Positions 1 through 52,473 of a DNA stretch of 64,000 nucleotides are shown piece after piece. The first letter of the stretch is position 1. Each line of letters begins with the position of its first letter. The translations under genes were made by a program, and so were the position numbers. Location of the stretch: contig JAAOMT010000769.1 of NCBI GenBank assembly GCA_016748015.1, forward strand, positions 4,441-68,440, written 5' to 3'. The notes below the pieces were generated by a model. The model was not told the origin of the DNA and did no database searches. It saw only the letters and a program-made list of their open reading frames with translations. The stretch is from Geosiphon pyriformis uo1 (Eukaryota > Fungi > Glomeromycota).

Positions 1-2640
1 GTTTTTTTTTTATATAATTGGTTTTGGCAAATCAAATAAAAATTTGATTGTTTTTACAAATGTTCTTTTTGATGTCAATTATATTTTAGTGAGTATTATT
101 TTTTATTCAAAAATTTGATAAATGCTAAGTAGTTTTCTAAGTCCATTGTTGTATTTGGTTTTAATATATATTATTAATAATTAAATTTATTAGTTTTTAC
201 TGATTTGTTTTATTTTACTGAATAACCAATCGAAATAAAATATCTATGTTTTAATTGTTTGTTTTTTTGCAATATTTAATGTTATAATTAAATTCGTTTA
301 AATAAATAATTTAGTAAAAAAGTCTTTTGTGGTTTAGTTTTTTTTATATTTTTTAATTAAATAAAAGCTTAGTAATTGGTATATATATTAAATTTATTTT
401 ATTAAATATTTGTTTCAATAAATTATACAATTGCTAAGCATTTTTTTAGTTGTTATATAGTTTTTTTTTGCTTATTATAAGATTTAATTACCATAAACTA
501 TGACTCATTTTTTTTGTGACAAAATAGCATTAAAAAAACATTAAAGACATTAGTATAAAAATAAATAGTTTGTTAAAATTAAGTTGCTTTAAGATTGGTT
601 TAATAATTAGTTTTTTCTTAAAAATTTCAAATGCTTTTTGCTAAAAGATATTTCAATGATAATTGATATTTTTTTTTAAAAGCTAATTAAATAAATATGC
701 AATTTTAGAAAATTTTTTAATAGATGTTTAGTAATATAAAGTTAATCCAAGAAAAAATTATAGTTCTAAAATGTTTATTAATTGTTTAAGCTTTTGTACT
801 TTTTCGACTTTGGTTAATGTAAAAAAAATTTATCTTTTATTACAAAATAATTTAAAAACTGGATAAATTGTTTTTAAAGAATGATTTAATAGAATTGATT
901 TTGAATTTGGTATTTTTTAAAAGATTAAAAACTTTTTAAAAATGTTTTAAATATTTATTTTAAGTTTTTAAGTATATAATAATATTATCAAGATATACAA
1001 AACAAACTTTTGATGTTTTAATTCAAATATTTTGTTTATTAATCTCTAAAATATAAGTAAAATATTTGTTAATCTAAAAGATATTACTATAAATTCATAA
1101 GTTTTATATTTTATAATAAATACAGTTTTTTTTTGCTGATAAAATTTATTTTTATTTGCCGAAATTTAACAGTTAAATCAATTTTTGTAAAATATGCTAA
1201 GCTATTAAATTGATTAAAAGTATTATTATTAATTTTTAGTAAAAAATACATGTTTTTTTTAGTAATTGTATTTAATTAATAATAATAAACACAAAATTAT
1301 AATTTTTTTTTTCTTAGATATTATTATAACAAAAATATTCATTGATTCTTGGTTTTTTGTATAAATTTTAATTTTTTGATTTAATTTTTTTTTTGATAAA
1401 TTTATTATTTTGTTAATTTAATTAATAATATTTTAAATAAATAGACTGGATATTTTTGGTTTTATTTATATGTTTAATTATTAAGAATTAAATTTTAAAC
1501 ACTTTTTTTTAAATGTTTTTTATACTACTTTGCTTTTTTTATCTAGAATTAAGCTGACCGATTCTTAATCTTTAAATAAGAATAAACATAATTTGTATTT
1601 ATTATTAAGGAGTAAAAAAATAGTTGTATTAGTATTATATACAAAAACTATATTATTAATAAATTTTTTTTTTAAGTTGTTATTTGAATATCCTTTTAAA
1701 TATATTATAATAAATAGATTTTTCTATTAACATATATATTATCTAAAAATTTTTTATTATTATTAAAAATAGTAAAAATTAATTAGGTCTTTTTATCATC
1801 TTTTTTTTCTTTAAAATTATCAAAATTATTAAATTTATTATTATTATTGTAATGTAATTATTGTTGTTAAATTATTACAAAAAAAATAGTTTAATATTAG
1901 TATTTAATTGTAATTAATATGGCTTTACTACAAATTGTAAATTTATAAAATTTATAATCTAAAAAAGTTTTTACTTTTTTTAACTATTTAATTCCAAAAA
2001 TTATGGTATAATACTTTGCTTTTAATACTTTTATATCAATTTCAATATACATATTATTAATTTTACTAGACATAAATACAATATTTAGTTATTGCAAAGT
2101 AAAAAATAAACAAATAATTAACTAAATCTTATTTAATTTTAATATTTTGTATTATTGTGTCCTAAAAGATTTCATTTACAAAAAGTGTATTTTGTACATA
2201 ATTTTGTTTTTTTTTCAATAGCAAACTTATAATGTTTGGTTTCTAAGCATTTTTTATGTAATAATACTAATAGATTTCAATTTGCTCAAACTTATTTTCT
2301 TTATTGACATTATCAACTTAATTGTTCTTCAGAACTTAATCTTGATTTTGAAGTATAAGCACTACTTTTTTATGTTGGTTAATAAATTGTTTTAATCATA
2401 TTATTATCTTATTATAATTGTTATGTTTAATAGCATACTAAACAGTCTGTTATATGAGTTTTTACATTTCATTCTATTTTTGTTTTCTCTGTGTTATAAG
2501 ATATAAAACATTAGTAATGATTTTAAATATAGTTAAAAAATTTGGAATTACTATTTTATTAGAAAAATTTTTTGTAGTTTCTTAATTTACAAAGCAAAAA
2601 GCTTTAATAATTAAATTATTGTTTTTTTTTTATTAGTATA
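1..2640 (-). mobile_element. Degenerate Ty3/Gypsy LTR-retrotransposon pol relic (protease-RT-RNase H), heavily C>T/G>A mutated
   Basis: Minus-strand translation gives eroded RT motifs FTKIDL (~1170-1190) and YLDN (984-995, from YLDD), plus remnants of FLGL..YY..FI.NFSKIA and KAFE.LK..L...PIL. Many stops and frameshifts. Confidence 0.75.
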
Positions 2641-2786
2641 CTATTAAAAAACTTCTTTCTTTCCTTCATCCAAAATTCCCAAAAAAGAGTCAAAAGTTTT
2701 TTTGAAAGAAGTTTTTTACCATTCAGTACGATAAATCAAAACCGTTTTTCGATTACGAGGCCACTGTTGGCTCTGTTATTGCTGTT

Positions 2787-4577
2787 ATAAAAAAGACTGC
2801 TAAAGTTTCTGGTTCTAAAAGTGGTTTTAAAGTGGTTGTATCAAGAAAAAAGAGGAAGGGAGGTGTGTTGGCAGAGGGTGTTGATAACGGAAGGGTTGCT
2901 GTTGAAGTTCCTGGTGTTTGTTCATGGAGTTCGGAGACTGGAGATACTACTGAGTCTGAAAGTGTTGATATGGAAGAGGAGTGTCTGGTGGAGAAAACCA
3001 GCTTTGATTATGGTGAAGGTGGAGCTCTGGCTGGTGGAGATTATGATCAGATGCCCACAAGTTCGAAGGTTAAAACCAAAAAGGCATTGAGCAAGTCATT
3101 GGGGAAAATTGACTTCTCAAAAGATGGTAGTGATGATGGTGTTCTCTCGGATGCTTCTCTTGAGCTCCCTCCTTCTGTGAGAAATTTGGTCAATGTTTCA
3201 GTCAGGAAATCATTCGCATTGAATATTGGCTTGGATAAAGTGGCCGGCAAATCTTCTCAGGAAAAACTTGTGGTGGTAAGGAAGTTGTTTTCTGGAATCA
3301 ATGGTTTTGGGGGGGCATCTACCCCCTCAAAATTCTCAGGGATCATCAGGGCGACATTCACTTCCAAATCAAGTCTAATGAAAGCTACTGATAAAGCTGC
3401 AAATGTGAAGATCTTAGTAAACGCCGATCTCAAAAAAGCATCTGGGCGATCAAATTGGGCTGTGGTCGTAAAAGAAATTCTGGTTGGAACATTGTCTAAG
3501 GCTGTGCGTGCTGCACTATCCAAGTTTGGAGTTATTAGGACGATCAAGATGCAGTTAATCAGGCTGTGGCAGAAGGCGGTGGTGAAATTTGAACAATTGG
3601 ATCAGGCTGATTTGGCTGCAGCTGAGTGGTCCATCTTAATCAGGAAAGATGCTGTGCGTATGGCTAGGGCTGATTCAGACAAGGAAGCATGGGATGTTAG
3701 GGACCGACATAGGGTGCTGCTCTATACGTTGCCGATGGGAACCAATGCTCATGATATCTGGGACTTTATTAGATCTGTGGGTGGGAAAACGTGCATCATT
3801 GATCGTCTTTCTGTTACGTATTGGGCCAGGTGTGCTGTTGTTTGTTTTGACTCTGCTGAATCATTGGATGCTGCAGTGGGAACCACGCCAGTACTCAGGA
3901 ACACTAATCTCCGCTGGTCTTGCCTTATTTCTGCTAAATGCGCCAAGTGTGAGAAATTGGGTCACATGTCATTGGGTTGTGCAGTTGGTGGGAAATTGTC
4001 TTCTAGTAGTTCACTGCGTAGGGTTTTCTCAGATACGGATAAAAGCAGGCTGGCAACCATCTATGCCAAACGCTCGGCTCCGGTTGCCCATCCAGTCTCT
4101 TTTGGTGGTCTCTCTTGGGCAAAGGTTGCTTGCGAGTCTTTTTTGCTCCCCCTCTCTGGTCAGAATGTTGTGGTAACAAATGGCTCCTCTTCAGAGATAA
4201 AGCCGTCCCAACCGGTTACGATGGAAGTCAATGATAGGTTTGCCGCTCTTGAGTGCAGTCTCGCCAGCCTTGCAGAGCAAGTTGGTAAGCTGGTTAAGAG
4301 GTTGGATGCATTCGGGCCAACGGTTTCCCAGTCTAGCCCTGGATGTCAGCCGTTGATAACCTCTTCATTACAGGATCAAGAGGCAGATGTAGTGATGAGT
4401 GAGGGTTTGAATGTGTCCACTAGTGGTGAGAATGTCGCAGGAGCGGTGTCTTTTGATATGTCTTCGGTGTCTAAGCTGGAAAACAGCATAAAGTGTCTAA
4501 TGGAAACAGTTCTGGGCCTTTCGGCCAAAGTGGACAGTTTAGGTGCGCTTTCGGTATCTCTACCTCTTACTCAATGA
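2787..4577 (+). CDS. LINE ORF1 (gag-like nucleic-acid chaperone, CCHC knuckle); start codon mutated ATG>ATA
   Basis: Open frame 2832-4577 with CAKCEKLGHMSLGC and a coiled-coil-like C-terminus. The in-frame ATA at 2787 aligns with the ATG at 35652 in LINE B. Confidence 0.8.
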   Translation: MKKTAKVSGSKSGFKVVVSRKKRKGGVLAEGVDNGRVAVEVPGVCSWSSETGDTTESESVDMEEECLVEKTSFDYGEGGALAGGDYDQMPTSSKVKTKKALSKSLGKIDFSKDGSDDGVLSDASLELPPSVRNLVNVSVRKSFALNIGLDKVAGKSSQEKLVVVRKLFSGINGFGGASTPSKFSGIIRATFTSKSSLMKATDKAANVKILVNADLKKASGRSNWAVVVKEILVGTLSKAVRAALSKFGVIRTIKMQLIRLWQKAVVKFEQLDQADLAAAEWSILIRKDAVRMARADSDKEAWDVRDRHRVLLYTLPMGTNAHDIWDFIRSVGGKTCIIDRLSVTYWARCAVVCFDSAESLDAAVGTTPVLRNTNLRWSCLISAKCAKCEKLGHMSLGCAVGGKLSSSSSLRRVFSDTDKSRLATIYAKRSAPVAHPVSFGGLSWAKVACESFLLPLSGQNVVVTNGSSSEIKPSQPVTMEVNDRFAALECSLASLAEQVGKLVKRLDAFGPTVSQSSPGCQPLITSSLQDQEADVVMSEGLNVSTSGENVAGAVSFDMSSVSKLENSIKCLMETVLGLSAKVDSLGALSVSLPLTQ

Positions 4578-7500
4578 GCAGTTTAGTCTGGAAAGTTGCT
4601 ACGTGCAATGTCAGGGGCATGAACAATCCCGCTAAGCAAGAAGACATTATTAGGTGGCATAAGGAAATGAACAATTTAGTCTCTATCATTACTGAAACAA
4701 AATTAAAGAGTAGGGTTCGTCCGTGGATTGCAGACAAGTTTGATGGTGTCCGAGTGTTCACTTCTGGTTTGGACTCTGGTCACTTGGGTGCGGGTGTTGC
4801 TGTTATCATGAACGATTCTTTGGCTCATCATGTGTGCAAGGTTTCTGAGGTGCTTGGTTGGCTCCTTTCCATTAAATTACTTTTTAAGAGTAAACTTTCT
4901 GTGTTGATTTTGGGGCTTTATGCTGATGCTTCTTCAGTGGTTTGGTTTTTTCAAGCTGGTGAAATCAATTCTCTCATTGCAAAGACTGTCAACAAATCTT
5001 CTTTCATTATTCTCGGTGGCAATTTTAATGAAGACGGCTCTCATAAATGTGCAAGTTTCAAAAAATGCTTTGATTTGGGTCTGGTCAATTCTTTAGTTGG
5101 CAGCCCGGCTGCAAAAATGCCCACTTGGGAAAATTCTAGGGGTGTTAAGAAAACAATTGATTACGTGTTTGTCTCCTCAAGTCTTGTCAATGCAATAGTG
5201 CATCGTGAGGTTTTGAATGTCAGTGAGCATTTTGACACAGACCATCAAGCTGTTTCAGTGGATTTGGGTCTGGGTGGGCTCTTGGATATGCGTTTGAATT
5301 CTCTTCGCAAGCAAGCGAATAAAGATCATTGGAAGTTTGACATCAAAAGTGCCAATGAAGCTAAGTGGTTGGAGTTCAGGGATGCCTCAGCTGCTAATGT
5401 CTCTATGTTCTCGGATGCTTTCGGTGTGGCAGTAAAATTTTCAGATGTGGACGCTATGTGGGACATTGTTCACAAGATTATGGTTCTTTCAGCAGGTGGT
5501 ACATTTAAGAAAAAATGGTTCAAAGATTTTGATGGCATGTTCACCAAGAATTCTTCTAGGATTCACAAGCTGGAGCTGCTGGTTTCTAAGTTGGTCAAGG
5601 CTTCACGTTTGGCTTCTAGTAATGGTTTTGCCTCTTTGTTGGAGGTGTGGCACAGACTCGACTCCCCTGGTGCATCAGTGGTTAAGTCTCTGTTTCTTTC
5701 AGGTTCTAATTTTGATCTTATTCGTTTTGCACTGGCCAAAGCTAGAAAATCATACTGCTCCTTCAAGTTAGTGAAATCCAAGCGTGCTGAGGAATCCTCA
5801 ATCAAGCAAGCTATTGGTAAGAGAATGGAGAGTTTTGAGCTGAACAAGGGTCACACCATTAGGAGTGTTTTGGAGTGTCCTCTTCGCAAAGTGGTCCTGG
5901 ATCATTTGGTTGTAGAAGATGAGTTGATTTTAGAGCCTGATTTGGTTAAGTCTAAGGTGGACGAAATTATGGAGAGATGGACCAGAAAACGTGAAGTGGT
6001 GTCTGACTTATCTGAGGATTGAACCCATCAATATCAGCCTCTGGATTACGTATTCGATGGTGCTTTCTCTGATGTCATGTGTTTGATTAGTTTTGATGAG
6101 TTGTTAGCTGTTGTTAAGAATCTTCTTGATGGAAAAGCGGCTGGTCTTTCTGGTATCTCCAATGAATTATGGAAACATTGTGACAAATCTGTTTTGGATA
6201 TGCTTTTGGTGCTCTTGAATTTCTGTTTGGTTGGCGAGTCGGTCCCTGGGCCTTGGAGAGAAGCTTGGGTTTTGATGATTCCTAAACCATATAAATGGGA
6301 GGGAGTTCTCACGAACACCCATCCTATAGCTTTAATTAAAACGGCCTGCAAGATTCTCTCCAAGATCCTTTCGGATAGGATCTTTCTGGCTTGCAGCACT
6401 TTTGATGTTCTTTGTGGGGACAATTTTTTGGTTTTGAAGGGTATGATGACTCAATTTTCCATTTTTGCTATCAGTTCTGTGGTTGAGGATGCCTTGGAAA
6501 AGAACCGTAAACTTTGGCTGGTTTTACAGGACATGTGCAAGGCTTATAACTCAGTTGGTTGGGAACATCTTAGGAGGAGTCTAGTCAGGATCAAAATGTG
6601 TGACAGGTTTATTAAATTTTTTGGCAGTATTCACAATGGTCGCGTCAACAAAGTGATGACCGACTTTGGCTTAACTGATGGGTATTGTGTCCACGATAGG
6701 CTGGATCAAGGGGAAGTTTTCTCGCCTCTTCTCTGGCGTATTTTTTATGATTCACTTTTGTGTAAGGTCAAGAGACAGGATAGTGTGTATGGCTACAGAT
6801 TGAATTCTCATTTCATATTAAGGACTGGCCAGGTGGATCCTCGAGCTGGGCTGTCTTCATTTCTTGCTGCCGGTGCTTTTGTTGATGATACTATCTGGAT
6901 TGGTAGCAGCCAGGCTGCTACACAATGCATCCTTGATGTTGCTAGCGAGTTTTTTAGGTTTAATGATATTTCTATAAACAATGACAAAACGGTGGCCATC
7001 CCCATCAATTGCCGGGTGCTGGATCCTTATTTGACTATTAGTGGTGCACTTATTTCCATTGCCAAGAGAGGGGAATCTCATCGCTATTTGGGTATTTTTT
7101 TGTCTTCTGAGGGTCTTTCGAAGCCCAGCTTGGCTAAGGCCCAGGCTGATGTATGGTTCTTTGCAAATCTTGTTTTAAGAAAGGCAATTTCGGACAAACA
7201 GTATGCATATTTGGTGTCTGCAGTTCTTTTCCCTATCATCAGCTACAGGACTCAGTTCAGTTTTGTTTCTGTTGGTGTTTGTAGTAAATGGGATGCTCTG
7301 GTTCGCAAGGTCTTAAAGTCCAAGTCTGGGTTGCCATGTGATTTTCCCAGTGATGTATTTCATCACCTCTCTTTGTACAATTTAAAAACTTTCGAAAAGA
7401 TACAGGCTGAGAGTAAATCGGCCTCCGTTGTTGCTTTCGCGAATTCTACTGGTGTCTTGGGTTGCTTGTTTTCTCATAGATCTCATGACCTCCAGGTTTT

Positions 7501-9262
7501 CAGCTGGCGTCTTTGTCATCCTTTGCTGTTTCCGGTTCATGTTGGTATCAGTCCCTTGGATAATTTTTTGGTGGGTGTGGTTTGCATTTTTTCTGGGTGT
7601 GATTTGTCTTTGGAAGGCCCTCTGGATTGTGTTTTTCGTCGTCGGTGTGGTACTCCTATGTCTTTGGTTCTTGGTGAATCCTGTTTTTTCAAGTGCATCT
7701 CTTTGCTCAGGCATTATGGAATTGCTTTCGTGGAACAGCTTCATAACCATAATGGTGATGTTTTCAGTTGAGGTACCTTCAAACACTGGAAGAGACTAGA
7801 CCCTCATGGCCCAGTCTCTTTCTGGTTTGATTTTTCTGTTTGCTTTCTTGGTGGTGTTGTTCTTCTTTCCTCAAGTTCTTCTTTGGTAGATGGTCAAGCT
7901 GTGTCTGATATTCGTCTTTCTCATAATTTTGGTGTGATTCGTGACACTTTGCCAACCATTGATGCTGCCCGCCTTTCTGTGTATACGGATGGGTCTCTTT
8001 CTGGTCTGGGCACTGCTGACATGAGAGCAGATGCTGCCACTTTTTTTGAGGATGTTAACTTGGGTTTGGGTGTTGGGGTGTCTGGTTTGGTTTCTTCTAC
8101 TCTGATGAAACTGCAGGCCATAGCTTTGGTCCTTGAATGTGTTCCTTTTTCTCGTTTGATTGACTTGTTCTCGGATAGCCAGACTGCTTTAGATGCATGT
8201 AGGTCGGAGTCTTTGCTAGTTTGTCTGGATTTCAGAAACTGCTGTTGGATCAAGCGTTATCATATTGCCACTGTCATTCGTCAAAAGAATTTGGATGTGA
8301 ATTGGGTTAAGGTGAAAGGTCATTCAGGTGTCTCAGGCAACGAGCATGCTGATGCGCTTGCCAAGGGTGCTGCTCGCTCTGCTTGGCACCTACTTCATTT
8401 AGTCAGTGAACGTTTTCTATGTGCTGGTGGCACAGCAGTTTCTGGTAATTCTAGACACTTTGTTCGTGATGTTTTCCAGTCGTTTCACCAAGCTCGTTGG
8501 GAGATTGGAGAGGGTTCTTGTGTTATGGATGATAGTTTGCGTGCTGATATCAATTGGTCTATGTCTTCTATGGTGTGGCACCCCGATTCTCACTTGGCAT
8601 CCAGTTTTACCAGTATGCGCATGGCGGGATGTCGTACTTACTTTATGAAGGCTCTTCATCATCGGCTTCTTGTTGCTGTGCGCAAGCATTTATATGACAG
8701 GAGTTACCCCAGTGTGGTCTGTCTGTTTTGTGGTGATGTTGAGACCTCAGATCATGTCTTTTTGTGTCCTCAGGATGCCGTTGGCCATGCTCGTTTGTTG
8801 GGCGCACATGCTTCAACTTGGGAGGCTCTTTCTGGCCTTTCTCACTCTTCTTCATGTGTCTTACAGGCCTTAGTTTCTTGTGTTTCTGAGATTGGAGTTA
8901 GTGTTGCTCTGTGTAAGGGTTTTGTTTTTGATAAATGGTTTTGTGAGTCTATTTCAGTCTTTAAAGATTCTAGGGAGGGTGCTAAGAGGATTGTAAGCTT
9001 TGTGTGTAAGTTTTGTTTAGCATTTTGGAATGATGTTTGGTTGGTCCGGGCCAGACACCGAGCATTTATGGAGAAGCATAGTTTGATTCCAAGTGATGGC
9101 TCCATTCCTGCTTCGGTTTCTGGTTTGCCTAAGGTGCTTTTGGCTGGTGTGGTCAGATTGCTGGAGGTGGCTGAGGCATTTGGTGTTGGTTTTGGGTTTC
9201 GTAAATTTTGTCCATTTTTTTCAGGTATTGGAGATTCAGTTTCTGTGCATATAAGTGTATAG
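4574..9262 (+). pseudogene. LINE ORF2: AP-endonuclease, reverse transcriptase, RNase H, C-terminal Cys/His knuckle; two in-frame TGA stops
   Basis: Motifs TCNVRG, ETK, GNFN(GDFN), IDY, TDH (APE); FVDD (RT); YTDGS...KVKGHSGVSGNEHADALAK (RNase H); CLFCGDVETSDHVFLC. ORF pieces 4493/6077/7883 share one frame and are broken only by TGA at 6020 and 7769. Confidence 0.92.
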
Positions 9263-11700
9263 TGTAATCCTGACTGGCTCGAGTGACTGGTGACGTGTAG
9301 AAAGCGCATGATTCGCACCTAGTTTAGATCATTTGTATGATGTATAGCACTAGGTCGCATTTGGATCTCACTCGTTAAAATATAAAAAAAAAAAAATACT
9401 ATTACAAAAGTATTATTTGAATATTAAATTCCACAATTTTTGAATATAATATTACTTAAAAATAATAGCAATAAACAATACTATAAGATATATTAAATAA
9501 ACATAAATAAAAATAAGAAACAGAATTAATAATTATAATAAAATATGAATATTTGCTGTTTTTTGATCATAGATTTGTGACTTTCTATATTTTTTTAATG
9601 TATTTTTATTGACTTTAGCAACTATTAATTTTAATAAAATTTGTTTTATATTATATACATCCTTAATAAACTCACTTATTATATTAAGACCAAAATTCTA
9701 AATATTAAAATGTTGTTAGATAAATAACTTAAAAAAGTACATTAGGAAATAAATTTTTTTATTTTATTATAAATATTAATATTCAATGATAATTAACTTA
9801 CAATAAAGTATAGGCATTATATCATTTCTAAATATTCTATAAATAAGATATAAAACATAAGATATTAAGTTATTTATTTGTTAATCTCAAAAAAAATGTT
9901 TATGGTCAATTAATATAATTTTTATACAAGATAAGAATGTATGATATTCAAAAAAATAATTTTATTTTATCTTATTTTTAAGTTTTACATCTAATATATC
10001 AGCAAAATTACAAACTGCTATTTGCTAAAAGGATGTATTTAATAATATTATTAAGACTTTTAATACAAAAAGTAATTTGAATTTCTGCAATAAATATTTT
10101 TGATGTAAATACATAGACTATTGCTTATTAATTAGAATAAAGAGCTCTCATTAAGTAATTTTTAATATTAACATATATTTTAGTAAGCTGTAACTATTGT
10201 TTATAAAAAGATTTTTTACATAAACTATTGTAACATAAAAAAAAATTATAAACAAAACTTTTATATTAATTATAAAGCTTTAACTTGAGATTTCATAATA
10301 AGTTTTCATTAATGTAAAAAATACAATAAATTTGATAAGTTGTTTTGTATACTTAAGCAACTACTATATCTGCTGTAAAATTAATATCAGTAATAAACAT
10401 TAATAATTTTGTTATTGTTGCTTTTTTTGTGTATTCTAGAATCTATTTATACAATTTAGCAGTTTTATTTAATATAAGGACTTGTGCAATAAAATGGAAT
10501 TTAGTGTTATTGTCTACAATAAAAAAGAGAAAAAATAATATTTGATAGTGATTAATTTTTGCTGTATTGTTATTTAGAACAATATTATAGTACTTTAACC
10601 AAAAAACAACTTGTGCAGAAGACTTCTAAAATATACAGATAAGTCAATTTTTATCAATTTTAAATTTTACAACTTATTTGGAATCATTTAATTTGCAATT
10701 TATAAGAGTTGTCAACAAGCAGAATGTATTGTGCTTTTTATTGCTATAAACTTTAAATCTTTATATTGTATTCATAAAGTCACAATTAAGAATAAATATT
10801 GTTAAAAATTTTACTTTTAATAATTTTCTTTGAATAATAATTGATAAATTTGCACATTTTGTATAAAATTAGATCTTTTAAAGAATGTTATCTGAAATTT
10901 TTTAATACATCAAAACATATTTTCTAGTGTTAGAATATAATAAATAATTGTGTGTATTATTAAGAGTAGTATGAGTTATTTTGTGTAAATTTTTAGTGCA
11001 GTTAACATTAGTATATTAACTATATTCTTAATGTTTTGATTTGGTGTTCTGATAATTTTAAACATTGATCTTTTTTTTTGGTTTATATTGGTCACCAAAT
11101 TCATATCCAAAAATACAATATTTAATATTGCTATCTGGATGTTATTTTAATTTCTTTTAAATAACTCTAAATCTTTGTTGTTTACTATAGATTTTTATAA
11201 TTATATTGATGTTTTTTTATGTTTCAAAAACATAATTGGTGCAAAATTTTATAGCTAAATAAATATAAGAAAATCAAACACTAAATATGATTAAAATTAT
11301 AACTAAAAATTTTATCTCTATTTATAAATACTTGGTTATTTAATTGGTATAAATTTTTATTGATGTAATTATGAAATTGATTGGCCAGCTTTACATTAAA
11401 AATAAATTTTAAATTAGAATAGAAATAACTTTAATCTTTTAATACATGATTTTTTATTAGACATATATATATATCTTTCTTTAAAAGCAAACTGGTTATT
11501 TCTTTTTGTTCTGTATTTATATTAAAATATTAATCTTAATACAATATATAATATATAGAGTATTATATTTAAAATTGCTATTATACTATTAATCACAGTA
11601 CTAATTAGTATATTTAAGTGAATATTATCTAGAATAATTTGAAGAGTCAGATTTTGTATAATTTATTGCCTTTAATACTTTAGAATCTATAGTTTATACT

Positions 11701-12660
11701 TGATATTACTAGATATTTTTGGTCTCTTTTTTTAAATATTGTTAATGTTTGTTTACTGTGAATTTATGTTTTCTAAAAGCTAGTAAACTTCTAATAACTG
11801 AATTTATCTTTAAATTATTTCCTATAATTTAAACTGCTAAGCTTATAAGTAAAATGATCAATTTTGTATCAGTTACTTTATATAGTTATATTGTAGTAAA
11901 TATCAACTTTTTTCCAGAAATTGCTTGTTTGAAAGCTCATTAAAATATGTAGTTATTTTGCTGTAAAAATCAACTCTTTTACAGAAATCTTGTCTATAGA
12001 CTACTTTAATAATTTTAATAAAAAAATATAAAAATATAAAAAAAATAGAATTTTGTTAAGAGAATCGTTTTTTGGTCCAGACTTAAAGTTACTAACAAAT
12101 TACTAAAATTAATAACTAATTAATTTTAAAACATTAGTTAAATTTCAGAAAAATTTTAATATATAAATAGTTAAAAAATTTGATTTTTAAGTATTTAATA
12201 TTTATATTATTTTTTGTAAAGCTAATTAATGTAAATTATAAGTAAAATATAATGAAAAATATATTTTCTTAAAGAAAAAAGCTTTTTTTTATACAATTTG
12301 TTGTAATATTAGTTTATAAACTTGAACTTTCTTTTTTTTCTATGATTTCAATGAACTAAAGATATATTTTGACAAACTAAAAATATATTTCAATGAATTA
12401 CAAGTTATTTTGATGAACTATTAACTATTTTGGTAAATTATCTATTATTTTTACAAATTTTTACAAATTTTAGTGAATTCTTAAATATTATATAGTTTAG
12501 AGTATTGTATAATTTGATCATCCTAATTTCTTTTGTATAAATTGGATTATTAATTAAATAATAAGTAATAATTTGAAATAATATTAATATATGCTAATTA
12601 ATGATAGAAATTATAAGAGTAATTTTATGCTAGTTAATAGCTAAAATTCTATTGATAACA
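11701..12660. repeat. ~960-bp LTR-like segment (TG...CA) present only in the left arm; related to ~14090-14750
   Basis: Begins tgatattac and ends ttgataaca; absent at the matching site ~47345. Internal blocks align directly with 14090-14750. No clean TSD. Confidence 0.4.
12346..12450. repeat. Degenerate ~21-bp minisatellite (tttcaatgaactaaagatata-like)
   Basis: About 5 imperfect tandem units visible. Confidence 0.55.
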
Positions 12661-12908
12661 CTAGTACACAAATTTCTATGCTTATATTTATAATATATAA
12701 GTTTTTTTGGTGATTTAAATACTATTTAAAACAAAAAAAACTTTTTGCTATGCAAGAATGAAAGCAGTTACACCAAAATTTTGATGTGTTTTTGTACTAC
12801 AATATACAGATGGCATACATCAAATTCAAAAGCTATATAATATAATATATGTAATTATTTTTAATTAATAAAAATAATTAATATTACATAATTTAAAACA
12901 GATTATGA

Positions 12909-12946
12909 CGTCGATCACTGCGCCATATATGGCGCAGTGATCGACG
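12909..12946. repeat. Perfect 38-bp palindrome CGTCGATCACTGCGCCATATATGGCGCAGTGATCGACG
   Basis: Equal to its own reverse complement over 38 nt. Confidence 0.97.
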
Positions 12947-12957
12947 AAACAAATAAA

Positions 12958-12989
12958 GTCACGTGTCACAATATTAAATCACGTGATTT
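12958..12989. promoter_or_regulatory. Two CACGTG E-box motifs (gtcacgtg; aaatcacgtgattt) next to the palindrome
   Basis: The motifs are present in the sequence; function is inferred only. One intact copy remains in the other arm (47041-47046). Confidence 0.4.
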
Positions 12990-15900
12990 TCCGAGGTTGT
13001 TACAACTAAATTAATCTTTAATAGTTTATTAACTTTTTTTTAATTGTATTTAAGAAATATTAAACTATAATATTAACTGATAAATTACTATTTAATACTA
13101 AATTTATAAAATATCTAACTATTTGTGTTTTACAAATAAGAGAAATAATATTATTACTAAAAATCAATATTATTTTATTAAAAACATTAATTAATCTTTG
13201 AATATTTTTTTGGATATTAAAGATTTTTAAAAGTTTTTTCAAAATTATGAATAAATTATAAATTGATCAAATATAATATAAACAGATGTTTTTATTAGAT
13301 CTTTATATACTGAATAAGAATTAAATTTTTAAATAATTTTTAATAGTTTTGGTTTTAATAAATTTTTGAATATTTTTAAAGCAGTAATATTAGAATTCAG
13401 ATTAAAATTTATTTTTTGTTTTTTAAATCTGATGTAACTTGATAGTTTGTTATTAATTTTTTGTAATTTTATGTTATTATTAATTAAATTAAAACTAAAC
13501 AAAAATTTTTTTTTTATTTTTAAAATATATGTTTATTAATTTAAAAACTTATATTTTGTTGTTTTAATTAAAAAAATTTTTTTAAAGAAGTTTACATAAG
13601 CTTAACTGTTGTTAATTTTATTATTAATTTAATTGTTATTTCTTATAATTAAAGAAAACATAAGTGAATTATTACAATTTTATGCTAAATAATCAGTGTT
13701 TTTATATTAATAACAGACTAAAAAATCTTAATTTTTAGATTTTAAATTATATTAAAACTATTGTAATTAATTATAATAAGATTAATATTAAAGTTTTAAA
13801 AATTTTTGGATTTTTTGTATTGTTTTAATTAATAGTTTTAAAAATTAAGCAAGATTTACTATTAGCCAATTTATAAATTATTTATTAAAATTCTGATAAT
13901 TATTGAAAAAAAAACATATTTTTTAAATGTTGTTACTAAAAGTTTTTTTATTCTTTTTTGATATTATTAATATTTGTTTTATTATTAATTCTGCTATTAA
14001 TAAAAGTTCTGATAAGCTAATTTTTTTTAAAGTATCTTTTTATACTTTAAATTATATGTGCTGTTAAATTTATAATAGAATGGCCAATTTTATGATAAAA
14101 ATTGATTTTTTACAGAAAAATCTTATCTGTAAGCTTTTTTAAATATGTGTAATTATTTTGCTATAAAATTTAACTTTTCTACAAAAAATTTTGACTTTTA
14201 ATTACTAAATAATATAAAAAAATAAACTAAAGAAAAAAAATAAAAAATGTGCTAAAAAAATTATTTTAAATTTAGGCTTAGAAGTTATTAACAATTACTA
14301 AAATTAATAATTAATTAATTTTAAAAGTTTAATAAAAAAAATAAGTTTTAAGTAATAATTAAAAGATTTAAGTTTTTTAATTTGAATTTTATTTGAATTA
14401 ATTTATAAAAAAAATAACTTAAGTTTAAGTAAAGATTGATTTTAACTAAAATATATTTTCTTAAAAAAAAAGCTTTTTTTTTATACAACTTGTTATAATA
14501 CTATTCTATAATTTAACATTTTTTTTTTAATATTTTAGCAAATTTTGAATATTATATAGTTTAGTGTATTGCATAATTTAATCATTATAATTTGATTATA
14601 TTTGTGTTCTATATAAATCATATTATTAATTGAATAAAAATTTAGATAATTTAAAAAGATAAAAAGTAATAAATTAAAATAATAATATATGCTAATTAAT
14701 AATAGAAATTATACAAATAATTTTATATTAAATAATATCTTAAATTTTGGTTAGTGTGATAAATAATTATTTAAGTATTAGAATAAATAACAAATTTATA
14801 ACTTAATACTTAATAGATAATTATAAAAATATATTTTGAAGATCTTTATATTCTAAAAGTTTTGGTTAAAGTTTTTTGTATAATAAACAAAAATTTAATA
14901 GCAAATAATTAGTAATACTTAGTATTTAATTTTTCAATATAATAACTGACTTATTCTGGTAAATGTATCTTTCTGGTAAGTAATTTTTACTATTTATTTT
15001 ATGCTTTGTTTTAATGTTTTTTAACAAATAATTTTTGATGTTATAATTTTAGTGCTTTTTTTAAACAATTTTAGTAAACACAACTAAAATAAAGAAAACA
15101 AAAAAAATTAAAAAATTAGTATTCTGTTAATAGCTATAATCAAGAGTTATTGTTCTAATATAATTAAATTTTAATTATTATTAACATAAATTATTGATAG
15201 AATAAAAAATAGAAAATAATTCAATTAAGTGATAATGATAACATAAATTAAATAGTAATTGATATTTTATTGATAAATAAATAATTTTACTTTAAGTAAT
15301 AGCAATTGTATTTTTTAATAAATACTTATTTAATATACTTTATAAAAACTAATAATTATACAAATCAAAAAAAAATAAATAAATAAATAGTAAAAAATAA
15401 ACAAAAGAATATATTATTGTATTCATCTAAATATAATTTAAGTATAAATGTTTTTCTATAGTTTTAAAAGATTTTGCTTATATATTCTTAAAAAAAAATC
15501 AAAGATTAAGTTAGTAATTATATTAATGATTTGTTTAATAATCAAGTTAATAATTAAGTCATTAATCAAGTTAATAATTATAGTAATAACTAGTTTTAAA
15601 AATAAAATGACTAATTAATAATATTAGTAATTAATACATATGATTAATTATGGCTAAGTAAATAAATAAAAACTAAAAAGTAAAAGATTTATTCATAACA
15701 ATACTTTTTAAAAATAATATTTCTATAAATTTAATTATACAAATTGACTAAAAAAATTACAAAAAAGTTAAATTAATATATCAAATTTACAAATAGATTT
15801 GTTATATTTTCAATTAATGAAATTGAAACATAATTTAAACAAAACAAAATAAATCTTAAAAGTTAGATATTTTATAGTTTAGTTTGTTAATAAATATAAT

Positions 15901-17956
15901 TTTAATTTTTTATTTTGTTAAATATATACGTTTTATTATAAATAAAAGATTTTATTATAAAATAATATTTTTTAGAATTATTAAAATTTAATATTTAATC
16001 TAATAAATACAGAGAAACTTCTTTAAAATTATAAAAATTTTATATAAATATTTAATCAAAAAATTAATTGTCTAAATTAAAATTAAGTTCTTTTTTCAAA
16101 AGATAAAACTTTATAATTTGATACTTAAATATCATTTTTTCAGAATATTAAATTTAAATAATTTATTGTATTGAAAGATTTATTTTTTATAAAAAACATT
16201 TCGATTAAAGATCTAATTTTAATTTATTATAATTATAAAAATATATAAATTCAAGATTTTTTATTAATATTATTTTTATTATAATTTTGTTAATTTATTA
16301 ATTTTATTTATTGTAATTGTCAATTAAATAATATGTAAAATTCATATTTTGGTAAAAACAGAATTTTTAATATTATTCAATAAAAACAAAAAAAATATTA
16401 TTAATATTATTTATAATTTATATATATTATAATTAAAACTGAAATTTTTATTAATATATTAAACAATATTTTTGGTAATGCATAATATATTGTAAAAAAA
16501 AACTATATATTTCTGTAAATTGTACTTTATAAAGCTAAATATATTATATAATATATTAATACTTTAACTAAAAATGTTGATCAAAAAAAATTTGTTATAA
16601 TTTAGTATTCTAATAATTACATTAAGTTTAAGTTTGTTAACTGCTTAATTGTTGATTTGTAAACTTATTTAATAAAGATTCTACATAAAAAACTTTTAAT
16701 AATTACAAAAAATAATTATAAAATTTCAAATATTTAAATATAATATGACAAAATAAAAATATTATATTATATATTTTAAATACTATTGTCAAAAAGAAAA
16801 AATTTTGTTTTGTCTTGTTGTTTAATAAGATTTAAATTGCTTTTATAATTTTTAATGTGGTTTAAAATCAATATATTTAAATTTTTACTGATTATTTATA
16901 GATAATTGACCAAAAAAAATAATAGTATTTATTCTTAAAAAATACTTAAAGATTAAAAATAGTTAATAAAAATAAAGTGTAAATTAATGTAATTGGTCTT
17001 AAAATCATAGTTGCTAATTTTTCAAAAAAATCCAAAAATAGAAAAATAATTGGTAATTGGTAATAAAAATAATACAGCTGTTATAATTTTTTCAAAAAAT
17101 ATTAAACTGATTTTAATTAAAGTATTAATTTTAATATTTATGTAATGTATTATAACTATTGATATCTTAACTATTATATTTATTATTTTAAAGTTTAACT
17201 GTAAAGTTATTGGTTAAATTTTGAATAATTTATACATGTATTTATTAATAATGATTAAACACAAATATAAATTGTGTATTTTTTATAACTTAATCCAATT
17301 AAGACCCTATTATTCAAAATTAATAAGATTTAAACAAAAGATAAGTTTGGTTACCTAGATTTAAAACATAAAATAGGATATATATTGGCTTTTGCGAATC
17401 TATAAGTTTTAAAAATATCACATTTTTAATCATTTTTTTTTAATTTATTACCACTTTCACAATTTGACAAAACAGCATTATTATTGAAAGTTAAACTGTT
17501 TTTTCTTTTTTCTTTTTAATTTAATTAAAGCCACATTTGTTTACAAAGTATTATGATAGGGGTCTTATGATTAAATCTTATGGTATTTTTATGCTCCACA
17601 CGAAGGCTAATTTGGTTTATCATTGTTGTTGTTGTTGTTATTGTTGTTCCGCAAAGAAATTGAACTAGTTATTTAACCAACAATACAATGAGACAATAGG
17701 AAACTTTTTCAGTATTTTGTGTACTATAGCAACTTAAATTTGTTCATAGTTAAACCTATTTAGTATAATGAATAAGGTTTAATAGATTGATTTATTTCTT
17801 CTATGCGAACATAGTAAGAAACAACATAAATAAGAACTCGTTTTTAAACAAATAATTTTCTAAATGTACTATCAAATAAACCTTTAAAGAAACCCTCTTT
17901 GAATAATAACTTATTCACTTTTTATCCTTCTTTATCCTTTGTTCTTTATCCACATC

Positions 17957-45200: not shown

Positions 45201-47059
45201 CTATTATTTAAAGTAAAATTATCTATTTATTAATAAATTATTAATTACTATTTAATTTATGTTATTATTATCACTTAATTGAATTATTTTCTATTCTTTG
45301 TTCTATCAATAATTTGTGCTAATAATAATTAATATTTAATTATATTAGAACAATAGCTCTTGATTATAGCTATTAACAGAATACTTATTTTTTAATTTAG
45401 TTGTGTTTACTAAAATTGATTAAAAAAAGCACTAAAATTATAACATTAAAAATTATTTATTAAAAAACATTAAAACAAAGCATAAAATAAATAATAAAAA
45501 TTACTTATTAAAAAGATATATTTATTAGAATAAATTAGTTATTAAACTGAAAAGTTAGATACTATAATAAATTGTATAAAAAAAAAGCTTTCTTTTTAAA
45601 AAAATATATTTTAATTAGAATGAATCTTTATTTAAACTTAAGTTATTTTTTTTATAAATCAATTCAAATAAAATTTAAATTAAAAAACATAAATCTTTTA
45701 ATTATTACTTAAATTTATTTTTTCTTATTAAATTTTAAAATTAATTAACTATTAATTTTAGTAATTATTAATAACTTCTAAGCCTAAATTTAAAATAATT
45801 TTTTAACCCATTTTTTATTTTTATAGCAAAATAATTACACATATTTTAAAAAGCTTACAGATAAAATTTTTCTGTAAAAAAATCAACTTTTATCACAAAA
45901 TTAGCCATTTTATTATAAATTCAACAGAATATATAATCTTAAGTATAAAAAAATACTTTTAAAAAAATTAGCTTATTAGAAATTCACAAACTTTTATTAA
46001 TAACAGATTACAATAAAACAAATATTAATAATATTAATAAAAAGTAAAAAAACTTTTGGTAACAGCATTTAAAAAATATGTTTTTGTTTTTTCTTTAATA
46101 ATTATTATATTATTTACTATTTATGTTCGGAATTTTATAAATAATTTATAAATTGGCTAATAGTAAATCTTGTTTAATTTTTAGAATTATTAGTTAAAGC
46201 AATACAAAAAATCCAAAAACCTTTAATATTAATCTTATTATAATTAATTATAATAGCTTTAATATAATTTAAAACCTAAAAATTAAGATTTTTTAGTCTG
46301 TTATCAATATAAAAACATTGGCTATTTGACATAAAATTGTAATAATTTACTAATGTTTTCTTTAATTATAAGAAATAACAATTAAATTAATAATAAAATT
46401 AATAATAGTTAAGCTTTTAATTCAAATACAAATTAGGCTTATATAAACTTTTTTAAAAAAATTTTTTTAAAAATATAAGTTTTTAAATTAATAAACATAT
46501 CTTTTAAAAATAAAAATACAAGCCAAAAAAAAAAGTTTTTTTGTTTAGTTTTAATTTAATTAATAATAACATAGAATTACAAAAAACTAATAGCAAACTA
46601 TTAAGTTATATCAGATTTAAAAAACAGAAAATAAATTTCAATCTGAATTTTAATACTACTACTTTAAAAATATTCAAAAATTTATCAAAATTAAAACTAT
46701 CAAAAATTATTCAAAAATTAAATTTTTATTTAATAGTTAATGATCTAATAAAAACACCTGTTTATATTATTTTTGATCACTTTATAATTTATTCACAATT
46801 CTGAAAAAACTTTCAAAAATTTTTAATATTCAAAAAATATATCCAAAGATTAACAAATGTTTTTAATAAAATAATATTTCTCTTATTTGTAAAACACAAA
46901 TATTTAGATATTTTATAAATTGATATTAAATACAATTAGAAAAAAAGTTAATAAACTATTAAGAATTAATTTAGTTATAACAACTTATTACAAAAAAAAT
47001 TTGTAACAACTTCGAAAAAGCATGTGATTTAATATTTTGACACGTGACTTTATTTGTTT

Positions 47060-47097
47060 CGTCGATCACTGCGCCATATATGGCGCAGTGATCAACG
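47060..47097. repeat. Second copy of the 38-bp palindrome (37/38 match)
   Basis: cgtcgatcactgcgccatatatggcgcagtgatcaacg. Confidence 0.95.
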
Positions 47098-49649
47098 TCT
47101 CAATTTGTTTTAAATTATGTAATATTAATTATTTTTATTAGTTAAAAATAATTACATATATTATATTATATAGTTTTTGAATTTGATATATATTATTTGT
47201 ATATTATAGTACAAAAACACATCAAAATTTTTGGTGTAACTGCTTTTATTCTTGCACAACAAAAAGTTTTTTTTGTTTAAACAGTACATAAGTTACAAGA
47301 AAAACTTATATATTATGAATATAAACATAAAAATTTGTGTACTAAATATAAACTATAAATTTTAAAGTGTTAAAGACAACAAGTTACACAAAATTTAATT
47401 CTTCAAACTATTTTAGATAATATTCACTTAAATATATTAATTATAATTATAATTGTAATTAATAGTATAATAGCAATTTTAAATATAATCATTTATATGT
47501 TATGTATTGTATTAAGATTAATATTTTAGTATAAATACAAGACAAAAAAATAACCAGTTTGCTTTTAGAGAAAAGTATATATATATTTCCAATAAAAAAT
47601 TATGTATTAAAAGATTAAAGTTATTTCTATCCTAATTTAGAATATATTTTTAATGTAAAACTGGTTAATCAATTCCAGAATTATGTCAATAAAAACCTAT
47701 TTCAATTAAATAATTAAGTGCTTATAAATAAATATAAGATCTTTGGTTATAATTTTAATCATATTTAGTGTCAAATTTTTTTAAATTTATTTAGCTATAA
47801 AATTTTGCACCAGTTATGTTTTTGAAACATAAAAAAATATCAATATAATTATAAAGACTTATAATAAACAACAAAAATTTGAAGTTATTTAAAAGAAATT
47901 AGAATAATATTCAGATGACAGCATTAAATATTGCACTTTTGGATGTAAATTTGGTGACCAATATAAACTAAAAAAAAAGATTAATGTTTAAAATTATTAA
48001 AATACCAAATTAAAACATTAAGAATATAGTTGGCATATCAATATTAACTGCACTAAAAACTTACATAAAATAACTCATATTATTTTTAACAATACACATA
48101 ATTATTTATTATATCTTAACATTAGAAAATATGCTTTGATATATTAAAAAATTTCAGATAATATTCTTTAAAAAATTTAATTTTTAACAGAATATACAAA
48201 TTTATTAATTACCATTCATAAAAAATTATTAAAAGTAAAATTTCTAATAGCATCTATTTTTAATTGTAACTTTATGAATGCATTACAAAGATTTAAAGTT
48301 TATGACAATAAAAAACACAATATATTTTACTTGTTAACAACTCTTATAAATTGCAAATCAAATAATTTTAAATAGGTTATAAAATTTAAAATTAATAAAA
48401 ATTGGCTTACTTGTATATTTTGAATGTCTTCTGTACAAGTTGTTCTTTGGTTAAAGTATTATAATATTGTTCTAAATGACAATACAGCAAAGACTAATTA
48501 TTATTAGATGTCATTTTCTCTTTTTTTTATTGTAGACAATAACACAAAATTTTATTTCATTGTACAAGCTCTTATATTAAATGAAACTGCTAAATTGTAT
48601 AAATAGATTTTAAAATGCACAAAAAAAGCAATAATAACAGAACCATTAAGGTTTATTACTAATATTAATTCTATAATAGATACAATAATTGCTTAAGTAT
48701 ACAAAACAATTTATTAAATTCATTGTATTTTTTACATTAAAAAAAACCTATCAAAATAACTTAAATCAAAGCTTCACAATCAATATAAAAGCTTTGTTTA
48801 TGAATTTTTTTTATGTTACAATAGTTTATGTAAAAAAATTTTTATAAACAATGATTACAACTTACTAAAATATATGTTAATACTAAAAATTATCTATTAA
48901 GAGCTTTTTATTTCAGTTGACAAATAATAGTCTATGTATTTATATTAAAATATTTATTACAGAAATTCAAACTATTTCTTACATTAAAGATCTTAATAAT
49001 ATTATTAAATACATGCTTTTAGCAAATAGCAGTTTGTGATTTTGTTAATACATTAGATATAAACTGGAAAATAAGACAAAATAAAGTTATTTTTTTTGAA
49101 TATTATATACTTTTATTTTGTATAAAAATCATATTAGTTGACCACGATTTTTTTTCTGAGATTAACAAATAAATAATTCAATACTTTATATCTTATATCT
49201 TATTTATAAAACATTTAAAAATGGCAAAATATTTATACTTTATTATAAGTTAATTATTATTGAATATTAATACTTATATTAATAATAAAATTTATTTCTT
49301 AATATATTTTTTTAAATTATTTATCTAACAACATTTTGATATTTAGGATTTTAATTTTAATATAATAAATAATTTTATTAAAAATGTATATAATATAAAA
49401 CAAATTTTATTGAAATTAATAGTTGCTAAAATCAATAAAAAAACATTAAAAAAGTGTAGAAAGTCACAAACCTATGACCAAAAAACAGCAAATATTTATA
49501 TTTTATTATAATTATTAATTCTGTTTCTTATTTTTATTCATGTTTATTTAATATATCTTATAGTATTATTTATTGCTATTATTTTTAAGTGATGTTATAT
49601 TCAAAAATTGTGAAATTTTACATTCAAATAATACTTTTGTAATAGTATA

Positions 49650-52473
49650 CTAATAAAAAAAAGACAATAATTTAATTATTAAAGCTTTTTGCTTTGTAAA
49701 TTAAGAGACTACAAAAATTTTTTCTAATAAAATAGTAATTCCAAATTTTTTAACTATACCTAAAACCATTACTAATGTTTTATATCTTATAACACAAAGA
49801 AAACAAAAATAGAATAAAATGTAAAAACTCACATAACAGGCTGTTTAGTATGCTATTAAACATAACAATTATAATAAGATAATAATATGATTAAAGCAAT
49901 TTATTAACCAACATAAAAAAGTAGTGCTTATATTTCAAAATCAAGACTAAGTTCTGGAGAACAATTAAGTTGATAATGTCAATAAAAAAAATAAGTTTGA
50001 GCAAATTGAAATCTATTAGTATTATTACATAAAGAATGCTTAAAAACCAAACATTATAAGTTTGCTATTGAAAAAAAAACAAAATTATGTACAAAATACA
50101 CTTTTTGTAAATGTAATCTTTTAGGATACAATAATACAAAATATTAAAATTAAATAAGATTTAGTCAATTATTTGTTTATTTTTTACTTTGCAATAACTA
50201 AATATTGCATTTATTTCTAGTAAAATTAATAATATGTATATTAAAATTGATATAAAAGTATTAAAAGCAAAGTATTATACCATAATTTTTGGAATTAAAT
50301 AGTTAAAAAAAGTAAAATTTTTTTTAGATTATAAATTTTATAAATTTACAATTTGTAGTAAAGCCATATTAATTACAATTGAATACTAATATTAAACTAT
50401 TTTTTTTGTAATAATTTAACAACAATAATTACACTACAATAATAATAATAAATTTAATAATTTTGATAATTTTAAAGAAAAAAAAGATGGTAAAAAGACC
50501 TAATTAATTTTTACTATTTTTAATAATAATAAAAAACTTTTAGATAATATATATGTTAATAATCAAATATTGATTGTTAATAGAAAAATCTATTTATTAT
50601 AATATATTTAAAAGGATATTCAAATAACAACTTAAAAAAAAATTTATTAATAATATAGTTTTTGTATATAATACTAATACAACTATTTTTTTACTCCTTA
50701 ATAATAAATACAAATTATGTTTATTATTATTTAAAGATTAAGAATCGGTCAGCTTAATTCTAGATAAAAAAAGCAAAGTAGTATAAAAAACATTTAAAAA
50801 AAAGTGTTTAAAATTTAATTCTTAATAATTAAACATATAAATAAAACCAAAAATATCCAGTCTATTTATTTAAAATATTATTAATTAAATTAACAAAATA
50901 ATAAATTTATCAAAAAAAAAATTAAATCAAAAAATTAAAATTTATACAAAAAACCAAGAATCAATGAATATTTTTGTTATAATAATATCTAAGAAAAAAA
51001 AAATTATAATTTTGTGTTTATTATTATTAATTAAATACAATTACTAAAAAAAACATGTATTTTTTACTAAAAATTAATAATAATACTTTTAATCAATTTA
51101 ATAGCTTAGCATATTTTACAAAAATTGATTTAACTGTTAAATTTNNNNNNNNNNNNNNNNNNNNNNNNNNNNNNNNNNNNNNNNNNNNNNNNNNNNNNNN
51201 NNNNNNNNNNNNAACGAATTTAATTATAACATTAAATATTGCAAAAAAACAAACAATTAAAACATAGATATTTTATTTCGATTGGTTATTCAGTAAAATA
51301 AAACAAATCAGTAAAAACTAATAAATTTAATTATTAATAATATATATTAAAACCAAATACAACAATGGACTTAGAAAACTACTTAGCATTTATCAAATTT
51401 TTGAATAAAAAATAATACTCACTAAAATATAATTGACATCAAAAAGAACATTTGTAAAAACAATCAAATTTTTATTTGATTTGCCAAAACCAATTATATA
51501 AAAAAAAAACCAAAAAAATCTTAATTAATTACAAAAAATTATTTAATTTAAAAAAAGAGAAATCAGGATTTATAATATACATACCGATTTTTTAACAGAA
51601 CATTTCAGAAAAACAAAAACTATTTAAAAAACATTAACACAATATTATTGGTTAATATTAAAAAAAGATATAACAAAATACATTATAACTTATCATATTT
51701 GCTAATAAAAAATAAATCTAATCGAAAAGAAAACATTTATTCCATATTTGTTAATTAATCTTTTAACAGAATTGAAATTAATGTTGTAAACTACTTAACA
51801 ATAACCTTTAATAAAAATAAAAATATTATAATAGTAACTAATTGCTATTTCAATAGCCAATTTTATCTATGAAAAATTATATATAGATGTAAATATTTTT
51901 AAGAATTACTTTCAAATAGAAAAAAAGCTTTTTTTAGCTTATTAATAAAAAAACTATTAAAGAAACTTGAAATATATCACAAATTTTTTTCTTTTTATTA
52001 TTTACAAATTAATAGATTAATAAAATATTTTAACTGAATACTTTATAAAACTTTAGCAAAAACTAGTAAAAAAATAAATCTATAGGACAAAGTTTTGTTT
52101 TCAGCTTTTTTTGTTTATAGAACAGTAAATTATAACATAACTGATTATGAACTTTTTTATTTATTTTATAAATATATAATAATATTATCTATTAAAACTA
52201 ATATTGAAACAATACTCTTTAAAGAAATAACAAAATTAAGTTATAAAAACTTTTTACAATAAAAATTTAGAACAATTTTAGACTTTTTAATAAAAACACA
52301 AATAATTGTTTATAAAAAAATAAAAACATTTCAAGAAAAACTTAAAAAAAAGAAAATCAAAACAATATTTTTAGTAACAAATTTTTAAGTTAATAAAAAA
52401 ATTATTCATAATTAACAAAATATTAAACAATAAATTTTATATATTGCAGAATTAATATAAAACAATATTTAAT
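49650..52473 (+). mobile_element. Degenerate Ty3/Gypsy pol relic (protease, RT start, integrase)
   Basis: Protease tail IDIKVLKAKYYTIIFGIK*LKKVK (~50245-50315); RT FCVYY..LNTITKKNMYFL.KINN...FTKIDL (~51010-51135); integrase HHCC remnant IHTDFLTEHFRKTKTI*K...YYW...KDITKYI.TYHIC (~51577-51702); core remnants FNRIEINVV, YYLQINRLIKYFN*ILYKTLAK and AFFVYRT. Confidence 0.85.
51145..51212. other. Assembly gap (68 N, although the mirror arm has ~860 bp here, 299-1161)
   Basis: The flanks match 1162 and 298 on the reverse complement. Confidence 0.95.

Follow-up and report, generated by a model that had tools for sequence, protein, structure and literature searches.

Sequence organization of the window

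The window analyzed here, a stretch of 64,000 nucleotides, derives from the genome of Geosiphon pyriformis, an AT-rich assembly of 128.3 Mb in 792 contigs, which carries Sel1-like repeats and kinases and whose nearest named proteins are those of Glomeromycotina. The window is dominated by a giant inverted duplication, the arms of which (1-21110 and 31769-51510) surround a unique gene block of 10.6 kb. Two ORFs of this block, a ribosomal-protein L19-like one at 24973-25302 and a UBA-like one near 22549-23620, were both named by eye. A Sel1-like repeat array and more kinase paralogues, typical expanded families of arbuscular mycorrhizal fungi (AMF), are found at 52732-53516, 57205-58599 and 62900-64000.

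The arms have diverged unevenly. Identity is 96-100% at 1-2651 and 86% at 9396-11701, within the same transposon, which may reflect recent conversion or a collapsed assembly close to the gap of N at 51145-51212. In the duplicated kinase segment (17688-20503 vs 32407-35254) decay is one-sided, the LINE-adjoining arm having lost 165 C/G and the other 12. The LINE copies themselves (2651-9396 and 35511-42258) are about 71% identical and were inserted separately, one in each arm; a short TSD and a poly(A) tail mark the first, and CpG depletion is stronger in the second.

Positions 12909-12946, the sequence of interest, form a perfect palindrome of 38 bp, which is the longest without N among the window palindromes listed and has a mirror copy matching at 37 of 38 positions (47060-47097). 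Nine CpGs are contained in the interval 12906-12996 (at 12909, 12912, 12921, 12933, 12942, 12945, 12962, 12982 and 12992) and seven in the mirror copy, against only three others in the rest of the region 10001-17000. Two CACGTG boxes (E-boxes), starting at 12960 and 12980, fit the bHLH/Cbf1 consensus, the CDEI motif RTCACRTG being matched at 12958-12965 and 12978-12985; the mirror copy retains one intact CACGTG (47041) and one CATGTG. On all these points a preliminary description of the region, made from the sequence alone, was confirmed. Its suggestion that the palindrome could underlie the inverted duplication found no support, since the palindrome is located mid-arm, with 8 kb separating it from the inner end and 13 kb or more from the outer one, and thus at neither the axis nor a junction.

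The features relevant to the analysis are listed below.

2053..13017, minus strand: MULE copy a, whole extent, without the last ~145 bp; split by a LINE (2651-9396) and by a 960-bp insert (11702-12661)
46963..50233, plus strand: MULE copy b, uninterrupted; same insertion as copy a, duplicated; 3' end truncated as in copy a
12997..13017, minus strand: 5' TIR of copy a, inner sub-repeat deleted by slippage; terminus 13017
46963..46992, plus strand: 5' TIR of copy b, 30 bp, contig position C434:51403-51432; terminus 46963
10302..10568, minus strand: decayed transposase DDE domain of copy a (PF10551, 32.4 bits; tblastn)
48469..48747, plus strand: decayed transposase DDE domain of copy b (PF10551, 42.3 bits; tblastn)
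12909..12946, no strand: perfect 38-bp palindrome, a collapsed 63-bp hairpin
47060..47097, no strand: mirror palindrome, 37/38, with a perfect 30-bp core
12960..12965, no strand: inner E-box CACGTG, CpG kept in 14/20 copies
12980..12985, no strand: outer E-box CACGTG, adjoining the TIR, CpG kept in 16/20 copies
12893..12996, ends approximate, minus strand: decay-protected subterminal block, putative transposase promoter; element positions ~25-150, defined by C/G loss vs context
12764..12792, approximate, minus strand: second short protected patch, element positions ~253-277; loss 0.07 vs 0.47 expected, 7 sites
13018..13600, right end approximate, no strand: flank repeat, target of the MULE insertion, unrelated, high-copy, CpG-free and decayed; not part of the element

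The palindrome block is the 5' end of a dead MULE

The block containing the palindrome is the front (5') end of a dead Mutator-type DNA transposon (MULE), dispersed in Geosiphon pyriformis. The preliminary description had stated that no transposable element terminus explains the block; this is not the case, as the 5' TIR of a MULE ends at 13017, with the block 20-110 bp inside this end. A genome-wide search for the palindrome core pattern, a search which had been proposed at that stage, detected seven near-identical places on six contigs, two of them on one contig, all within one transposon family and tied to this MULE; an assembly artefact is therefore very unlikely. When aligned, the copies show a common terminus, followed by unrelated flanks, and are dispersed. 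In the window, a DNA search revealed that, a few bases beyond the E-boxes on their right side, family similarity gives way to an unrelated second repeat. Elements of the family measure about 3.4 kb (for example, C446:93964-97353) and are present in about 30 copies; 30 of their 3' TIRs were detected genome-wide as short pattern matches.

The transposase domain PF10551 (MULE DDE) scored over the cut-off of 27.6 bits in both window copies, as well as in many other copies. The closest proteins are the FAR1-MULE transposases of Diversispora, Rhizophagus, Dentiscutata and Cetraspora, all Glomeromycotina. By tblastn and protein comparison, identity to the closest intact relative (P0002) is 48-51% for the window copies and 70% for the inferred ancestor. 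The N-terminus of the transposase aligns with the FAR1-bearing protein P0040, and a relative of its C-terminal part, P0122, has SWIM-like cysteines. No intact transposase copy was seen, all copies examined carrying stops. Among the catalytic residues, the first D is kept in copy b and the second in copy a; the C of the CxxH motif is kept and its H is read as Y, the E of copy a is read as K, and the W is lost, changes which fit a C-to-T/G-to-A decay.

Both ends are visible in an internally deleted copy (L043), where the TIR is a 30-bp imperfect repeat, identical at 26 of 30 positions between the ends. A TSD of 9 bp was recognized in four copies, located on contigs C634 (9/9), C649 (8/9), C647 (8/9) and C607 (9/9, with one extra base); the comparison excludes the window copies, the 3' end of which is deleted. 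For C634 and C649, the left flank was predicted from the right flank, and each prediction gave a single genomic match, at the expected place. A 10-bp register had failed at the predicted places, and the 9-bp register then matched. The criteria applied for MULEs are a TSD of 8-11 bp and a TIR of 14-500 bp (PMC6446971). The shared terminus, the MULE transposase, the TIR and the TSD together identify the block as the 5' subterminal region, upstream of the transposase. A Helitron or Helentron 3' hairpin was rejected in view of the DDE transposase, the TIRs and the 9-bp TSDs of the element; a reading of the block as an LTR end was also rejected. Ten bases in the flank of a 3' end at C708:95766-95791 are shared with the 5' flank of the C634 copy, probably by chance in AT-rich DNA, as the C634 copy has its own TSD.

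The family is new, within a known superfamily. It is a dead, short-TIR family, which was amplified in one burst and then eroded by the C-to-T decay of the host; a phylogeny of the copies built from transversions was star-like and uninformative. Loci L025 and L043 gave no matches in Rfam, and no paper on this MULE family or on the protection of AMF transposons by E-boxes was found in the literature covered, which included few subscription papers.

The two window copies derive from one insertion, later duplicated, because the flanks, the ~145-bp 3' truncation, two private transversions and one variant of the TIR are common to both. C/G positions were lost almost independently in the two copies (a shared fraction of 0.30 against an expected 0.23, as in unrelated pairs), so most of the decay postdates the duplication. 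Copy a is interrupted at 11702-12661 by a 960-bp AT-rich insertion with short inverted ends. The 5' TIR of both copies (12997-13017 and 46963-46992) carries bases typical of the 3' TIR, which suggests conversion between the element ends before the duplication.

The 5' block escapes C-to-T decay

Decay was evaluated against ancestral states inferred from the copies themselves, body statistics being referred to the first 1.9 kb of the element. In the body, 48% of ancestral C are read as T and 50% of G as A, while every other change is at or below 1%. No context is spared, TpC and CpG being affected most, and only 5 of 268 body CpGs are intact (4 of 241 when sites are defined by the outgroup). 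In contrast, the 11 CpG sites of the terminal ~135 bp are intact in 140 of 173 cases, and in 124 of 154 after removal of duplicated insertions. At element positions 1-150 the loss of C/G is 0.09-0.19, where 0.49-0.61 would be expected from context; it is lowest in the bins covering 53-102 bp, and the expectation is regained from ~150 bp. As CpG sites of the same copy are not independent and ancestral states come from the copies, p-values overstate certainty, but the effect size is unaffected. The shielding is real, family-wide and far beyond chance, being observed in 17-20 independent insertions and not just in the two window arms. The block is thus part of a transposable element, but, contrary to an alternative considered in advance, not an ordinary one decaying like its flanks. 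A second protected patch (12764-12792), about 100 bp further downstream, is possibly a transcription start or another bound site.

A passive effect, in which decay fades near repeat ends or beside ordinary chromatin and no specific cis element is required, is unlikely as the whole explanation, but leaves some trace in the data. The 3' ends, viewed as short pattern matches plus one locus, keep 220 of 330 C/G in their TIR (0.67, hand count), compared to 0.5 in the body; part of the 5' protection is therefore a general end effect. The outer bases of the 5' TIR track the flank, 28 of 45 being kept beside CpG-free flanks and 45 of 50 beside CpG-rich ones (about 0.6 vs 0.9, hand tally), and retention in the block itself shows a weak positive trend with flank CpG content (rho 0.43, p 0.09). 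However, block C/G are kept at 0.84 in nine copies whose flanks are decayed and CpG-free, and at 0.89 in eight copies with CpG-rich flanks, and the window copies, which lie inside a fully decayed repeat, kept 8/8 and 6/8 in the block. In addition, protection peaks inside the TIR rather than at the edge and stops sharply at ~150 bp, and an equally deep CpG, 58 bp inside the 3' end, is kept in only 6 of 19 cases (Fisher p 2.5e-5 vs the 5' block, for this one site).

The palindrome is a collapsed, unstable hairpin

The palindrome block folds with a z-score of -8.7 relative to 200 dinucleotide shuffles. Comparison of 21 copies revealed 10 with a long form of the hairpin, 7 with a short one, including both window copies, 1 with half of it and 3 with none. 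In the long form, a 63-bp hairpin, a 3-base loop and two additional CACGTG boxes are flanked by two 12-bp self-palindromic units; the short form has lost the 25 bp between these direct units, and with them the two additional boxes, leaving a loop-less perfect 38-mer. The perfect 38-bp palindrome is hence the product of slippage deletion from a longer hairpin and has no unique role. Half and complete losses of the hairpin run through short microhomologies. The deletion of the TIR sub-repeat, which distinguishes copy a from copy b, cuts across the hairpin classes, indicating that slippage recurs after insertion. Matching changes in both arms were found in three copies (C446, C588 and C647), a sign of arm-to-arm template switching. 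Altogether, this is the behaviour of an unstable hairpin, not of a selected chromosomal site. A nested CACTA/CMC mini-element with a CACTG...CAGTG core was rejected, since all seven pattern matches are in the MULE and the hairpin losses are microhomology deletions, none being a precise excision. No homologous hairpin was found in the Diversispora and Rhizophagus relatives, and the exact palindrome had no match in the JGI metagenomes.

The hairpin might itself shield the block, if extrusion of a cruciform excluded nucleosomes or the methyltransferase, or if template switching between the arms repaired mismatches. The very stable fold (z between -7 and -9), the copying between arms documented by the concerted changes and the position of the minimum of C/G loss would all suit this explanation, which had also been proposed in the preliminary description. 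It is nevertheless improbable: copies missing all or half of the hairpin (n=3) keep 15 of 16 CpGs, CpG retention is no higher with the long hairpin (74/98) than with the short one (35/40), and protection reaches 50 bp beyond the hairpin, while copying between arms homogenizes them without favouring C. Hairpin-less copies, such as those on C683, C779 and C607, are few, and the loss of the hairpin there may postdate most of the decay.

A putative E-box-bound promoter

As the hairpin is probably not responsible, the flank not mainly and the end effect not alone, the protection would depend on something intrinsic to the block. Because it is found across independent insertions, a protein-bound cis element is the best inference; this part of the preliminary interpretation, which had proposed a shielded, protein-bound or cruciform-forming site, holds, whereas its cruciform part is disfavoured. 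We would give an even chance to the reading that the block is the transposase promoter and that a host bHLH factor occupies its cluster of E-boxes and thereby excludes methylation. In this mechanism the two to four CACGTG boxes would bind a Cbf1/USF-like host factor, and the bound factor would keep the block open and unmethylated, allowing its cytosines to escape deamination at every landing site of the element. The CpG island would then be a mutational footprint of protein binding, rather than the outcome of selection on each copy.

A host bHLH factor is suggested by the number of E-boxes, by their location in a MULE promoter region, by the presence of CACGTG in Rhizophagus and by what is known of CpG methylation in AMF. 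MULE ends carry the transposase promoter (PMC6446971). Transposable elements of AMF are CpG-methylated (PMC8647823), and these fungi retain DNMT1, DNMT5, DIM-2 and RID (PMC8298701). At four Rhizophagus MULE loci, two of one family, CACGTG is located 130-890 bp upstream of the called gene. Several observations speak against the E-boxes: CpGs between and beyond the boxes are as well protected as those within them, the copy of Diversispora epigaea has CATGTG at the corresponding places, and CACGTG shows no enrichment among the surviving CpGs of the other decayed repeats examined (0 of 51). None of the copies compared lacks the E-boxes while retaining the rest of the block.

It is distinctly unlikely that the block is bound instead by a transposase-derived or element-family protein, such as a FAR1-type zinc finger or a VANC-like anti-silencing factor, recognizing subterminal motifs and keeping them unmethylated. 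The transposase of this MULE does have a FAR1-type N-terminus, and plant FHY3/FAR1 bind CACGCGC, a similar motif to which papers on these proteins are linked. Furthermore, VANDAL MULEs demethylate themselves via VANC (PMC6446971), and subterminal repeats are common in MULEs (PMC5225508). Yet, given the stops in all copies examined, such a binder would need to persist elsewhere; a second ORF was not seen; and binding sites would be expected at both ends, but the 3' end, as seen in L043, is without CACGTG and less protected.

A selected chromosomal element (a point-centromere CDEI-like site, an origin, an insulator or a resolvase site), which would also drive the inverted duplication, is very improbable and was not supported when proposed roles of this kind were examined, because, despite the RTCACRTG match, the long palindrome and the conservation, the block holds a constant place within one dispersed MULE and scatters with the transposon, its palindrome or hairpin is deleted or collapsed in half of the copies, and it lies at neither the axis nor the ends of the duplication (inner ends 21110 and 31769). 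A point centromere was rejected specifically, as the site is always in a MULE end, occurs twice on one contig and has lost the hairpin in several copies; so was a resolvase or telomere-resolution site, the palindrome being mid-arm and the junctions at 21110 and 31769 and at or beyond window positions 1 and 51510.

The sequence of the block is in itself that of an ordinary MULE end; what is noteworthy is its sharp, flank-independent escape from a very strong C-to-T decay. The escape argues that decay depends on the local state of chromatin or methylation and that a short cis element is able to stop it; with about 20 copies, some of them carrying natural deletions, the family provides replicates and controls for testing such a local block. 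Beyond the E-box-bound promoter, we tentatively propose, at somewhat less than even chance, that a transposon-borne, position-independent element of ~130 bp may repel DNA methylation even in fully decayed heterochromatic repeats, and that C-to-T decay could serve as a natural footprinting assay for protein-bound cis elements. If true, such an assay would suit a group of fungi for which genetic tools are scarce. The escape of the block also points to CpG islands of decayed repeats as places to search for regulatory motifs of arbuscular mycorrhizal fungi and their relatives.

Comparison with known systems

Known systems close to the block are Cbf1/CDEI and USF-type E-box sites and factor-protected unmethylated islands. 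The block has in common with them the RTCACRTG core, tandem boxes and local survival of CpGs; unlike the Cbf1/CDEI sites, it resides on a transposon, in about 20 dispersed copies and with no centromere context, and its binding is predicted. The TIR promoters of maize MuDR and the VANDAL/VANC system of Arabidopsis (PMC6446971) are similar in placing a promoter at the element end and in the local escape from methylation. The TIR described here, however, is just 30 bp, with the protected block inside it, a VANC-like second ORF is not seen, and protection has outlived the activity of the element.

The decay itself resembles RIP or methylation-driven decay of fungal repeats, being made up almost purely of C-to-T and G-to-A changes on both strands (0.48 and 0.50, others ≤0.01). 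Unlike RIP, it affects all contexts, CpG and TpC most, and is not CpA-specific. RIP signatures have been reported to be absent in Gigaspora margarita (PMC8647823).

The closest elements are the FAR1-MULE-SWIM transposons of Glomeromycotina, represented by D. epigaea PQFF01000086.1 (L057) and a Logan contig (L058). They share the MULE DDE domain, FAR1-type and SWIM fingers, TIRs starting with GG and a 9-bp TSD, and have 69-74% nucleotide identity with the inferred Geosiphon ancestor and a homologous TIR. They differ in that the relatives seen are without the 63-bp hairpin, and the Geosiphon family is far more C-to-T eroded, so that the 5' block is conspicuous there as a CpG island. In the D. 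epigaea element, the TIR, 55 bp long, is homologous and the coding part is ~73% identical; no TSD was seen in this copy. Over L057:995-6050, a nucleotide identity of ~73% with the inferred ancestor is retained despite the deep split of the hosts, which could reflect either horizontal transfer or slow evolution.

Two further structures were observed in Rhizophagus. In one MULE family, a different, near-perfect GC-rich hairpin of 70 bp directly follows the transposase gene (L061:6576-6645 and L064:6098-6167). In addition, a small TIR element (L059:2092-2691) contains three extended E-boxes, nearly identical to the Geosiphon ones.
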